Assembly: GCF_006345805.1 (NCBI RefSeq)
Contig: NC_043007.1
Coordinates: 75,826,001-75,890,000, forward strand
Length of the DNA: 64,000 nucleotides
Direction of reading: 5' to 3'
DNA from: Octopus sinensis
Taxonomy: Eukaryota
This document shows, piece by piece, positions 5,341 through 58,545 of the stretch. Position 1 is the first letter of the stretch. The number at the start of each line of letters is the position of its first letter. Both the position numbers and the translations under genes were made by a program. The notes beneath the pieces are model-generated. The model made no database searches. It was given only the letters and a program-made list of their open reading frames with translations, and had not been told where the DNA came from.

Positions 5341-5891
5341 CAGTACACTCATAGCTCCTTAGCTAAACAATTGTCAATGATTTTGCATTTGTTTTGTGGC
5401 ATATACTGAATCTGTGTGTTTTGCTCTGATTTACTGTATAAAGAATACTCTCTTAATCAATCCTTAATGCATTCTGAAACAAAACACAAGGCATTTTGAT
5501 GGACTCCTTTAAAATCTATCAACCTTCTAGATTATGTGCAACAATTCTCATGTTCTCTGTCCTAGAATACTTTCTTCTCTTTGCTAGAATGTTACTGCTT
5601 GGGACACATTTTGTCCTGGTACTTGACCACAAGCACTACCTTTGTCTATAATTTTCCTACTATATCATATACTTCACATTTCTTATATATTTCTGTTTCT
5701 ACTATTTTCCTTTTGAAAAGAAAATTTTGTGGATTATAAGCTGAAGTAACTCCAAATAACATGATTCAATCTCTTGCAGTCTAAACATGACCAATGTCAT
5801 ATATGGTTGCTCCAAATCTAAGATAACATAAATGGTGTGACATTTGCAATACAAGAAATAATTATCAAGTAAAGAATAAAATCGAACTAAC

Positions 5892-6011
5892 CTCATTTAT
5901 TGAACAGCAGCACAACAAGGATGAAGAGACAATTGACAAAACGAATTCCACAACCATAGCAAATGCTGCAAGACTAAACAAAATATAGAGTCTTGTTGGA
6001 TTATGATAACG
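5892..6011 (-). CDS. Gene 1 exon, TM4 (RYHNPTRLYILFSLAAFAMVVEFVLSIVSSSLLCCCSINE)
   Basis: tcttctttttcag acceptor and GAG|gttagt donor; 120 bp, phase 0-0. The xEFxLSIxSSxxCC pattern is typical of CD20/MS4A-like TM4. Confidence 0.85.
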
Positions 6012-7306
6012 CTGAAAAAGAAGAAAAAGAATAGTTGAATGAGAAAGAAAGTGACTGATATGATTATCTTGTTACAAAGAAAGTTATTTTCCATGCTTTT
6101 CTAGTGGTATGGGAATTAATCTTGCAAAATTGATATTTTGCTCTTAAAACCATTATGTCAAAATGGTTTAAATGTAGTCTTTTATTGTTTTACTAGTTTC
6201 AGTAATTTCAGTGTGGTCATGCTGGAGTACCACCTTCAAGGATATAGCCGATTATATCAACCTGTCAACTTAAAGTACTTTCACTGGTTCTAATTCCATC
6301 AGCCTCAGATGGATGAAAAACAAAGTTGTTGATCTAAGGAAGGATTTGAACTCAAAACCTAAAGGAACATAACCAAATATCACTACCTGTTCTGTAAGAC
6401 ATTTTACCATTTCTACATCCAGCAACTTGTATATAAATTCATATAAATATTACAGTGTTTCTCAGAGAAAATTTCAGGAAAGTAAAGTTTTATAGAAATT
6501 ATTACAGAGAAGTTTATAAAATGCACACACATAATTCTAACTGTAGGATTTCTATTAGAGAAACTATTGAAAAAATGAAGTAATAATATCCAATTATTAA
6601 TGATTATATTACTGTTCTGCAACATCAAATGATTATCTATTCTGACTATTTCAGCCAAACAATAACACCATAATTCCAAATATCTAAAATTAATTTTTAA
6701 AGTACCCACATTGTCTTTTATGTTAGTTAATGTTAATGCTAATTGGTGTTTGATGAGTTTTGTAATTTAGTTTTTATTTTGTAAAACAGAATTTTGAATT
6801 ATTTAGTCACTGGTTAGCAACAGGTGATATGCACAGTCTGAACACAAATACAAGGCCCTGAAGACAAACAAAACCATAACAAAAAATTAATTAAATGAAA
6901 GAAAAAAAAAAAAATGGGTTTAACAATCTACAAATGCTTCCCATCAAAATTTTTTGAGAGAAGAGTGAGAGGTGGTCAAAAGTTCAATATTGGTATAAAA
7001 TCCTTCCATTACAAGGAAGATGTTAAAAGTTGGGGGAATCATGCCCTTTTTTGAAGAGAGTACAAACATGTGTAATGATTTCTACAAGGAATTAGAACCA
7101 AGTTCTTGAATCAATTCACTTAGAACTTTCAGTACTCACAACTATCAACATGATAGTAAATTTATAATTATGATGAAAAATTAATGTACAGATTAAAAAT
7201 ACCCGGCTTGTCACTGCAGGACTACACAACTTTCACTTTCTCTAATTGATAACACAGAGAGGAAAAATCTTTTATTCTTTTACTCTCCTTCTTCCTAGTC
7301 ACTTAC

Positions 7307-7342
7307 AGATGAACTTATCTACCCACAGAATGGATAGCAGAA
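7307..7342 (-). CDS. Candidate 36-nt gene 1 loop exon with in-frame TAG (FCYPFCG*ISSS)
   Basis: ttgcag acceptor and CT|gtaagt donor; phase 0-0, between the TM3 and TM4 exons. TAG at 7321-7319. Confidence 0.35.
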
Positions 7343-7443
7343 CTGCAATTAATTGGTGTACAATAATTCAAAGAAGACAATTTATTATAGTTCTTGAATT
7401 TAAGTATATAGCTCAGAAAACAGTTGGTTAAAAATACACTTAC

Positions 7444-7533
7444 AAGCCATAATGCATGGCTAGCAAAAGCACCAATTCCAGTGTGTGCAAAGACAGATGC
7501 TGACAAAATGGAAAGGATCATATAGGTAATTTT
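7444..7533 (-). CDS. Gene 1 exon, TM3 (KITYMILSILSASVFAHTGIGAFASHALWL)
   Basis: tttcgtttcag acceptor and CTT|gtaagt donor; 90 bp, phase 0-0, hydrophobic. Confidence 0.85.
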
Positions 7534-55200: not shown

Positions 55201-55539
55201 TGCAAAAACAGATTGTATGTATATATTTATGTCATTATTCATATTTTTTTTCAAGATTTCTTGCTGATAGAGAAAGAGTCAGTTTCTATCCTAGATCCAA
55301 GACTCTTTCAGTGGAATTTCAGTAACATCATGTATGTATGTATGTATGTATGTATGTATGTATGTATGTATGTATGTATGTATGTATGTATGTATGTATG
55401 TATGTATGTATGTGTGCATGCATGTGTATGTTTGTATATATGTATGTATGTATGTATGTATGTGTGTATGTGTGTATGTATGTATGTATGTATGTATGTA
55501 GGTAGGTAGGAAGGTAGGTAGGTAGGCAGGCAGGCAGGC

Positions 55540-56050
55540 CAATCAATTGCTATGTTCAAGAAGTTGGCTTCTCTTAAGCAGTGTTCTACAGAGATTTGGA
55601 AACCTAGGTTGTTGAAGAAGCTATGAAGACTCTTAGAATTCATCTGTGAGTTGACAGTTGTTATTGTTGATAGCAAGGAACTATAAATCACCTTTAGAAC
55701 CTTGGAAGGTATCTTTCATGATATGCAAGAGGTATAGTCACTGATCTCTGCTGAATCGATTGCACACATGCTGATATCAAAATGTGTAGGGGAGTTTTTA
55801 TTGGACCAAAGGGTATCTTTATGTCTGACAAAAAGTTTGTCAAGCAAAAAAGAGCTTCTGTATTTCTTCATCTGAAGTCACAGGTATGGTTTATTCAAAG
55901 TTTATGGCTTTTATGAATAGCTGTTTTCTTATAGACAGGTAATAATTCAAGCAGTAGAAACTCTGTGGGGATAAGTTCAGAAGGTCAAAATTACTCAAAT
56001 ATATTTGCCACTCAAATCTTAAATAACCTTCAAGTAAAGTTTTATTAAAA
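55540..56050 (-). mobile_element. PLE RT fragment
   Basis: KAINF..SDEEI..HFDISM..DSAEIS..FNNLGFQISVE..ANFLNI, resembling 16168-16629. Confidence 0.6.
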
Positions 56051-56467
56051 AAGGTCCACTTTTTTTTAACAGATATCAGATAAACAGACAAACGTTTGTG
56101 TTAACTTAATGATGTTTGACGAATCTCATTATCTCTACACTTGCTTTCTTCTCTTAGCTAACATCTTACTACCTTCACTACTTTATCTCTTGATATTTAA
56201 CCACAAACATTGCTTTATCTATTTTTTTATCTTATCCTGTATTACTCATTTCCTATTGATTTTCATTTATTTTCCTTTCTAAGGGAACATTTTGCAGTTT
56301 ATAAGCTGAAGTAACTCCAAGTCATGTAACTCAATCTCTTGCAGTCTAAACAAGAACAATGTCATATATATGGTATCTTCAAATCTAAGATGACATAAAT
56401 GGTGCGACATTTGATGTGTCTTGCAATACAACAAACAATTATCAAATAAATAAAACACTGCACTTAC

Positions 56468-56560
56468 CTCTATTCCTGAACAGCGATAACAAAAATATAA
56501 AGAAGCAATTGCAAAAGTTAAATTCAGAAACAGTGAAAAAATTCCAACATAATGTATTGG
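56468..56560 (-). CDS. Gene 2 exon, TM4 (PIHYVGIFSLFLNLTFAIASLYFCYRCSGIE)
   Basis: tttcttttcttttgcag acceptor and GAG|gtaagt donor; 93 bp, phase 0-0. Flanks are collinear with those of 5892-6011. Confidence 0.85.
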
Positions 56561-58545
56561 CTGCAAAAGAAAAGAAACATTTGAAAGAGAAAGAAAGTGA
56601 TAGAAATAACATTGCCAAAAAGAAGTATTATTCATACTTTTCGAGTAGTCATCATCGTCATCATCATCATTTAGCATCCGCTTTCCATGCTAGCATGGGT
56701 TGGACGGTTCAACTGGGGTCTGGGAAACCAGATGGCTGCACCAGGCCCAGTCTGATCTGGCAATGTTTCTACGGCTGGATGCCCTTCTTATGCCAACCAC
56801 TCTGTGAGTGTAGTGGGTGCTTTTTACGTGCCAGATGGGGCTGGCAAATGGCCACGGTCGGATGGTGCTTTTTAAAGCTGATGTTTTACTTTTAAAGATT
56901 TCTGTGTAGTGTTAAAATAGCTTTAATGCAGTCTTTTACTGTTTTACTAGTTTCAGTAATTTGAATGTGGCATTGCTGGGGTACCACCTTCTAAGATATA
57001 GCCGATTATATTAACCTAAATTAATTTTACTGATTCTAATTTCATCAGCCTCAGATGGATGAAAAATAAAGTTGCTGACCGAAGGAAGGATTTGAACTCA
57101 GAACCTAAAAGAATATAACCAATTTACCACAACCTGTTCTGTAAGACATTTTACCATTTCTACACCCAGCAACTTGTACATTAATTTATATGAATATCAC
57201 TGTATTTTTCAGGAAATAAAATTTCTATAGAAATTACTATAGAGAAGTTAATAAAATGCATACACATAATTCTAACTGTAGGATTTCTATTAGAGAAACT
57301 ATTGAAAAAATGAAGAAATAATATCCAATTATTAATGATTCAATTATTGTTCTGCAGCATCAAATGATTATCTATTCTGACTATTTCAGCCAAACAATAA
57401 CACCATAATTCCAAATATCTAAATTTAATTTTTAAAGTATCCACATTGTCTTTTATGTTAGTTAATGTTAATGCTAATTGGTGTTTGATGAATTTTGTAA
57501 TTTAGTTTTTATTTTGTAAAACAGAATTTTGAATTATTTAGTGTCTGTCCAACAACAGATACTATGAATAAATGGTTTGTTTCTTCACTCCCAGCCTGAG
57601 CACAAGTACAAAGCACCTGATGATAATCACGAAGGAAACCATCCCTCAAAATTTAACTGAATTAAAGAAGATACAAAAAGTTTTTACGAAAACCAAAAAT
57701 TAGTTTAACAATCTATAAATGTTTTCCATCAATAAAAGTCAATAATTTAAAATAATTTCATACAATCACAACTTTGATTAATAATTTCTGATCTAGATAT
57801 TTTTAATCTGTACATTAATTGTTCATCACAGTTATAAATTTATTATCATGTTTATTATAGTTGTGAGTACTGTAAGTTCCAAAGGAATTGATTTCAGAAC
57901 TTGTTTCCAATTTCTTGGAGAAATCCTTCCACATGTTTGTAATGCTCTTCAAGAAAGGGCATGATTCCCAGTCTCTACCACCATCCTTGCAAAAGTAGTA
58001 TTTCATGTCAACATAGATATTCTGGACTACCTCATTTTCTCTTTGTTCTCAAAAACCAAAAATTGTAGGTTTGTCTCAAAGACCACATAGAACTACTGTT
58101 TTAACTATGTAACCTGTGCCGGTGGCACGTAAAAAGCATCCGCTACACTCATGGAGTGGTTGGCATTAGGAAGGGCATCCAGCTGTAGAAACACTGCCAG
58201 ATCAGTCTGGGTCTGGCGCAGCCTTCTGACTTCCCAGACCCCAATTGAACCGTCCAACCCATGCTAGCATGGAAAACGGATGATGATGATGATGATGATG
58301 ATGATGATGATGAACCCATTTTTACTTGTTAAAAATGATATGTGCAAAATAGCTTCATCAAAGAAAAGCTGCTTTTCCAAAACACAAATTTATTTAGTAG
58401 AAAAAGTCAATTATTCACATGCTTTCAATTTAAGCTGACAGTAAGCAGTTTTTGTTCTGATTTTTTATATCATAAAAATAAAAGAGTTAATTTTCATTGT
58501 TAAAGGAAAGTATCAACAAAATGATTCAGGTAAGAATATACTTAC

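Follow-up and report, generated by a model that had tools for sequence, protein, structure and literature searches.

The window analysed here is a 64-kb stretch of Octopus sinensis DNA (CM016869.1:75826001-75890000; positions are counted from its first letter), and our subject is the fourth exon of the gene LOC115217098, hereafter gene 1, together with a copy of this exon found about 50 kb upstream and oriented the same way. Gene 1 runs on the minus strand, and four of its five exons fall inside the window, the fifth being situated about 1 kb past the window start. Its product is XP_029642555.1 (P0001), a protein of 214 aa annotated as 'uncharacterized protein LOC115217098', which an exhaustive HMMER search recovered as identical to the open reading frame (ORF) at 13654-13863; a word-index protein search with this ORF, which carries the first transmembrane segment (TM1), gave no match. 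The sequence of the gene 1 locus (L001) matches window positions 1-23860 exactly. Exon 1 (13654..13860, minus strand), placed from the annotated protein, contains the start codon, TM1 and the beginning of TM2; exon 2 (9765..9836, minus strand) was located by tblastn and a hidden Markov model (HMM) of the protein family, and exon 3 occupies 7444..7533 on the minus strand. Exon 4 (5892..6011, minus strand; RYHNPTRLYILFSLAAFAMVVEFVLSIVSSSLLCCCSINE) encodes TM4, agrees with XP_029642555.1 at 100% identity, is recognised by the family HMM at E = 3e-17 and is bounded by the acceptor cag and by the donor gttagt following GAG.

The upstream copy of the exon (PIHYVGIFSLFLNLTFAIASLYFCYRCSGIE; 56468..56560, minus strand), referred to below as copy 2, is collinear with exon 4 of gene 1; its reading frame is open and its splice sites are intact (acceptor ttgcag, donor gtaagt following GAG). 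A sequence-only reading of the locus had taken it for part of a second gene, 'gene 2', paralogous to the first. This premise did not hold, as copy 2 is accompanied by no other family exons in the window: neither tblastn with 13 family proteins nor the family HMM found exons 1-3 or 5 near it within the 64 kb. Applied to all stop-to-stop fragments of the window, the HMM recovers the four gene 1 exons at E = 1e-20 to 1e-4, gives the copy 2 exon 7.8 bits (E = 0.49) and yields no further matches. A tblastx comparison of the two regions, the output of which was swamped by microsatellites, revealed no coding exons in common. Detectable homology is confined to 5570-7201 on the side of gene 1 and to 56144-58055 on the side of copy 2, a fragment of about 1.9 kb in which exon 4 lies between portions of introns 3 and 4; the homology stops at 7201, about 240 bp before exon 3. 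A second pair of similar sequences (17443-17686 and 63618-63864, 90% identical) is collinear with the exon 4 fragments; the first member lies 3.6 kb upstream of exon 1 of gene 1, the second 7 kb upstream of the copied exon. It may be a trace of a larger original duplication or else a low-copy repeat; the matching stretch of Octopus bimaculoides falls in runs of N.

The copied exon is degenerate. The TM4 motif of the family, E-F-x-L-x-I-V-S-S-S-x-x-C-C-C-S, is cysteine-rich and nearly invariant, and in copy 2, which reads N-L-T-F-A-I-A-S-L-Y-F-C-Y-R-C-S, 4 of the 11 conserved positions are kept; the seven losses include the glutamate, two of the three serines and two of the three cysteines. In the details of this comparison the sequence-only reading was accurate: gene 1 has a Glu in TM4 (VVEFVL) where copy 2 has Asn (FLNLTF), the loop is shortened, the exon being 27 nt (9 codons) shorter, and there are 27 mismatches between the final 72 nt of the exons (62.5% identity, 6/24 aa). 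These mismatches are distributed 9/8/10 over the three codon positions. Nonsynonymous (dN) and synonymous (dS) divergence over 24 codons amount to 0.58 and 0.34 (pN 0.40, pS 0.28), and the resulting dN/dS of about 1.7, which relies on only 4.5 synonymous differences, is indistinguishable from 1 (nonsynonymous vs synonymous, p = 0.77). At sites where three other paralogs agree, copy 2 carries 16 derived changes and gene 1 carries 4, and the copy 2 exon is about equidistant from exon 4 of every paralog (56-67% nucleotide identity). Its peptide is present in none of the family proteins recovered from protein databases. A short interspersed nuclear element (SINE; 56649..56874), found in copy 2 only, interrupts the intron relic 88 bp upstream of the exon; it belongs to a 200-240-bp family with other copies at 8894-9156, 24759-25081, 58112-58313, 59512-59767 and 61971-62280. 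Judged from its sequence, 'gene 2' thus appears to be an ancient unprocessed duplicate fragment with an exon decayed in the absence of constraint, and it constitutes no demonstrable paralogous gene.

A segment-by-segment alignment of the two O. sinensis copies with the gene 1 ortholog from O. bimaculoides (locus L006) reveals a mosaic of divergence. Between gene 1 and the ortholog the divergence (K) is 0.01-0.09 in every segment. Between gene 1 and copy 2, the downstream limit of homology in intron 4 (5570..5736, minus strand) belongs to an old stratum, with 67% identity to 56144-56299 and K of 0.43. The first 155 nt of the same intron (5737..5891, minus strand) are of intermediate divergence, their 85.7% identity to 56300..56467 (minus strand; K = 0.158) agreeing with the approximate 85% estimated before. 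K reaches 0.64 in exon 4 and is 0.34 in the adjoining part of intron 3 (6012..6155, minus strand), another piece of the old stratum, whose counterpart at 56561-56648 is the one interrupted by the SINE. The next part of intron 3 is SINE-like (6156..6452, minus strand), contains the B-box-like GAGTTCAAATCC and a 60-bp module common to the 400-bp SINE family of the window, and is again intermediate, being 87% identical to 56910..57195 (minus strand), with K of 0.138 to copy 2 as against 0.040 to the ortholog. After 6453-6530 (K = 0.23) follows the block at 6531-6807, where K is 0.030. Aligned without gaps to 57266-57542, this block has, exactly as counted by hand earlier, eight mismatches in 277 bp (97.1% identity), located at 6581, 6606, 6607, 6612, 6622, 6689, 6705 and 6757. 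Upstream of it intron 3 returns to the old stratum (6808..6950, minus strand; K = 0.32; counterpart 57543-57745), and the last homologous piece, 6951..7201, is inverted in copy 2 (58055-57798, 79% identity) and forms the upstream end of the fragment. This terminal 255-bp piece is otherwise unique in the roughly 290 kb of octopus DNA sampled.

At least three strata can be distinguished statistically. The intermediate pieces differ from the old ones (p = 2e-8), and the block differs both from the adjoining SINE-like part (8/277 vs 46/355 mismatches, Fisher p = 3e-6) and from the other intron pieces (8/277 vs 146/553, p = 6e-20). Changes unique to copy 2 make up most of the differences, and their per-site frequency ranges from 0.02 to 0.39 across segments. 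Since non-functional sequence should change at a uniform rate, this unevenness points to different times of last common ancestry rather than to constraint on gene 1. The earlier claim that the exon diverges far more than the introns therefore needs to be divided: it stands by construction in comparison with the pieces refreshed by conversion, as argued below, and is at most weakly borne out in comparison with the oldest ones, the exon and the piece 5570-5736 having 27/72 and 51/156 mismatches (p = 0.55). Intron alignments, moreover, were gap-optimised, so that intron identity is flattered relative to that of the exon. What is anomalous is an excess of similarity in parts of the intron rather than an excess of difference in the exon.

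The ortholog allows the youngest of these parts to be placed in time. L006 is collinear with gene 1 throughout, its segments being 93-99% identical, and intron 3 of the ortholog contains the block at the same position (L006 16757-17027), where its identity is 93.4% with gene 1 and 92.7% with copy 2. Conservation of the block between species is no higher than that of its flanks (93.5-96.5%), and the other introns of gene 1 show comparable values of 0.89-0.96 in well-aligned windows. Site patterns, however, change abruptly at its edges. Inside 6527-6807 there are 16 sites at which gene 1 and copy 2 agree against the ortholog, 5 unique to copy 2 and 3 unique to gene 1; in the same alignment outside the block the corresponding counts are 8, 67 and 14 (16 vs 5 against 8 vs 67, Fisher p = 1.4e-8). 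The tree is thus ((gene 1, copy 2), ortholog) in the block and ((gene 1, ortholog), copy 2) in all flanking segments. Copy-2-unique sites at 6526 and 6808 bound the affected tract, with edges at 6526/6527 and 6807/6808 and a length of about 280 bp, between 6527..6807 in intron 3 of gene 1 and 57262..57542 in the copy 2 fragment, where the distance between the two copies (0.030) is smaller than that between gene 1 and the ortholog (0.072).

We interpret the block on this evidence as a gene conversion tract of about 280 bp, which would have been transferred from gene 1 to copy 2 after the split of O. sinensis and O. bimaculoides. The direction is suggested by the distance of gene 1 from L006, which within the block (0.072) stays at the level usual for the orthologs, neighbouring segments giving 0.05-0.09; this makes gene 1 the probable donor and copy 2 the acceptor. 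From the 3 + 5 differences that remain, the age of the event can be put, very roughly, at one third of that of the species split. Of the two explanations advanced in the sequence-only reading, intron-limited gene conversion is therefore upheld for the 277-bp block by the topology switch relative to the ortholog. Strong diversifying selection on the protein finds no support, given a lone exon that retains few of the conserved TM4 positions, an even spread of substitutions over codon positions and a dN/dS that does not depart from neutrality.

Conversion is likely to be behind the two pieces of 86-87% identity, 6156-6452 and 5737-5891, as well. Their K of about 0.14-0.16 between gene 1 and copy 2 is about equal to that between copy 2 and the ortholog, and their homogenisation is therefore older than the species split. 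At least one such older event would be implied, which may have run in either direction. The history of the intron is further illuminated by a third copy of the unit 6057-6452, which resides in intron 3 of O. bimaculoides LOC128249092, inside a stretch of 877 bp at L002 20689-21573. The O. sinensis co-orthologs (L003, L004) lack this stretch, which is bordered by the similar motifs GATCAGCTCTGACA and GATTATCATCTCTATCA and whose last 373 bp share 78% identity with gene 1 intron 3. Either O. sinensis lost it through a microhomology-mediated deletion, or it represents a further transfer from one paralog to another. In the piece adjoining the exon the three copies are about equidistant (K ~0.3), and for the SINE-like piece the shortest distance is that between gene 1 and copy 2; these distances are consistent with copy 2 having arisen long ago and parts of its intron having been homogenised afterwards. 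It is also because of this gene-1-like stretch that L002 resembles gene 1. LOC128249092 itself is ruled out as the ortholog of gene 1 in O. bimaculoides, the true ortholog being LOC106870695.

What could be the process behind this arrangement? We consider it very probable that pieces of gene 1 introns were converted onto a decayed exon 4 relic by interlocus (non-allelic) gene conversion. The starting point would be a functional gene 1 with an ancient unprocessed duplicate some 50 kb upstream, the relic exon of which drifted without constraint. In at least two rounds, the corresponding parts of the relic would then have been overwritten with pieces of gene 1 introns: older conversion, in a single event or several and preceding the species split, would have produced 6156-6452 and 5737-5891 at 86-87% identity, and a recent event after the split would have produced the approximately 280 bp of 6527-6807 at 97%. 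Unconverted stretches, the exon among them, would have kept their old divergence, giving introns the appearance of being more alike than exons. Few events would suffice for such a pattern, and an exon of 93-120 bp might have been missed by chance. Alternatively, the 40% mismatch and the 27-nt indel of the exon may hinder the formation of heteroduplexes; a dependence of gene conversion on high local identity is described in PMC3966223.

Several observations nevertheless weigh against this explanation. Both intermediate tracts border the exon at nearly equal K (0.14 and 0.16), as would be expected if a functional exon were selectively protected; no segment is nominally more diverged than the exon (40/93 mismatches vs 111/381 in pooled old intron, p = 0.013); and chance alone would leave a frame of 31 codons open in about 10% of cases at this base composition and would preserve the four splice nucleotides in about 24% by our own estimate. 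Copy 2, besides, was studied as O. sinensis sequence alone. These features would be accommodated if copy 2 still worked, or had worked until recently, as a gene or exon whose TM4 had changed radically and from which selection for the new sequence kept conversion out. It would then be an 'island of divergence' with tracts of similar age on both sides and none across it, a pattern that has been described under gene conversion (PMC3728101); the open frame, the intact splice sites and the nominal dN/dS of 1.7 point in the same direction. We nevertheless regard this alternative as improbable. Exons 1-3 and 5 were not found nearby in the 64-kb window, 7 of the 11 conserved TM4 positions are gone, a SINE has inserted 88 bp upstream of the exon, the peptide does not occur among the family proteins recovered from databases, and substitutions are even across codon positions and do not differ significantly between nonsynonymous and synonymous sites. 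Nothing in the present sequence would seem to favour a once-functional divergent exon that selection shielded from conversion. A narrower variant, in which 56468-56560, its splice sites kept and its flanks refreshed by conversion, is alive in an unannotated transcript, for instance as a new small membrane peptide or a non-coding RNA, with the change in TM4 selected and conversion kept out, appears highly unlikely to us.

The remaining alternatives concern the block itself. Its AT-rich, non-coding composition, its sharp right edge and its proximity to SINE-like sequence might suggest a young mobile repeat that landed independently at both sites, and a high-copy repeat of this kind had been named as the finding that would undermine the earlier comparison. 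Such independent insertion has hardly any credibility in view of the collinear homologous context in both copies and of the orthologous intron position in O. bimaculoides, where the identity of 93.4% resembles that of the flanks. A search of the window and of four other family loci (about 190 kb) yielded no further copies of the block, although it should be noted against our interpretation that copies were counted in about 220 kb of related loci besides the window, some 290 kb of octopus DNA. The block has no terminal inverted repeats, no flanking direct repeats and no tRNA, and with no other copies in the sample a transposon is ruled out. There is slightly more to recommend a functional non-coding element, an enhancer or an RNA, under purifying selection in both copies, as high identity between copies and 93% identity between species would be expected of it, but the probability we attach to it is very small. 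The block is conserved no better than its neighbours or the rest of the gene, and constraint predicts near-equal lineage rates, which the 16 vs 3 sites reject (p = 0.004). An RNA gene in particular is ruled out by the lack of any Rfam match above noise and by folding no better than that of shuffled sequences (z = 0.04), and regional constraint around exon 4 is ruled out by a between-species identity (0.93-0.96) similar to that of the gene's other introns. Finally, reads of one copy might have been used for the other during assembly, a known risk for short near-identical stretches in a repeat-rich genome. We give this practically no weight, as eight differences persist, the block runs without gaps into copy-specific flanks, and there are no runs of N in L001 or in this part of the window.

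Interlocus conversion between a gene and a linked duplicate or pseudogene is familiar from the human CYP21A2/CYP21A1P and GBA/GBAP1 pairs and from globin clusters. The octopus locus resembles these systems in the shortness of its tract (about 280 bp), in the location of the partners on the same chromosome, 50 kb apart and in the same orientation, in the abrupt drop of divergence relative to the flanks, in the grouping of same-species paralogs against the ortholog and in the dependence on flanking identity; general properties of the process are treated in PMC3966223. Here, however, the functional gene would be the donor and the relic the acceptor, hence no consequence for a protein, and all detected tracts are intronic. 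With unprocessed pseudogene fragments copy 2 shares the retention of intron flanks and splice sites, the lack of other exons, the loss of conserved residues and the absence of codon-position bias; unlike a typical fragment of this sort, it remains open over its 31 codons and parts of it would have been kept 'young' by conversion.

Accelerated exons within conserved introns are known from snake venom phospholipase A2 genes and from conotoxin genes. The likeness of our case to these is superficial and is limited to introns being more alike than exons between duplicates. The venom and conotoxin genes are whole functional genes in which dN exceeds both dS and intron divergence across the mature protein, whereas here a lone degenerate exon shows a dN/dS indistinguishable from 1 and the similarity of introns would stem from conversion. 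A closer parallel in form is provided by the GOT1 paralogs of Tigriopus, in which islands of divergence persist under gene conversion, according to PMC3728101. In both cases homogenised stretches of the duplicates alternate with diverged ones. In Tigriopus both copies are intact and the islands are read as selection, while the unconverted exon considered here bears no sign of constraint or function.

The process is well known, and the present case is only a new instance of it. It nevertheless calls for caution in repeat-rich genomes with tandem gene families, where conversion onto a decaying fragment can produce a pattern of introns being more alike than exons. Before positive selection is inferred from such a pattern, it should be checked whether the partner is a whole gene, what the pattern in an ortholog is and how substitutions are spread over codon positions. 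The locus also offers a clean and datable cephalopod example, in which a tract of about 280 bp has an identified donor and is younger than the split of O. sinensis and O. bimaculoides, and it draws attention to an uncharacterised, cephalopod-restricted family of proteins with four transmembrane segments.

This family, represented in our set by 13 proteins (P0001, P0007 and P0009-P0019), is small, restricted to cephalopods and clustered on one chromosome in both O. sinensis and O. bimaculoides. No Pfam family matches it above threshold: for CD20-like/MS4A (PF04103) the best score is 20.4 bits against a cut-off of 27.9, in one truncated member only, and for Tetraspanin (PF00335) the best E-value is 0.0017, below threshold and in 2 of the 13 members. 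A classic tetraspanin is ruled out for gene 1, there being no CCG motif on the gene strand in addition to the sub-threshold Pfam matches, and the PDB holds no related solved structure. Gene 1 is a fast-evolving member, with 73% protein identity between O. sinensis and its O. bimaculoides ortholog (P0019) as compared with 86-90% in two other paralog pairs, and in this ortholog the TM4 Glu has been replaced by Asp. In Octopus vulgaris the gene 1 protein has near-identical counterparts. The first 20 residues of one O. vulgaris isoform, CAI9729915.1, match window positions 27499-27558 (minus strand) at 95%, which suggests an alternative first exon of gene 1 lying 13.7 kb upstream of exon 1. Real paralogs of gene 1 display the usual pattern of exons being more similar than introns: exon 4 of LOC115216970, LOC115217485 and LOC115217350 is 77-85% identical to that of gene 1, and at most about 40 nt of their introns adjoining the exon can be aligned to it.

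The window is rich in other repeats. Two SINE families are abundant, the one of about 200-240 bp introduced above and one of about 400 bp, whose members occur at 2371-2770, 30876-31274, 39468-39836, 41973-42366 and 52776-53192. Intron 4 of gene 1 contains a minisatellite (4587-5217) arranged as an array of 19/95-bp units, and another minisatellite, at 49054-49765, consists of 7.4 copies of a 96-bp unit with 96% matches. Intron 1 of gene 1 carries an element of 240 bp (13290-13529) that looks like a young repeat, with copies at 33797-34036 (98%) and, inverted, at 34650-34879 (95%). A retroelement-like fragment at 62564-63414, whose translation includes RRLRWYGHVARI, has two matches of 88-90% identity in locus L002 of O. 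bimaculoides.

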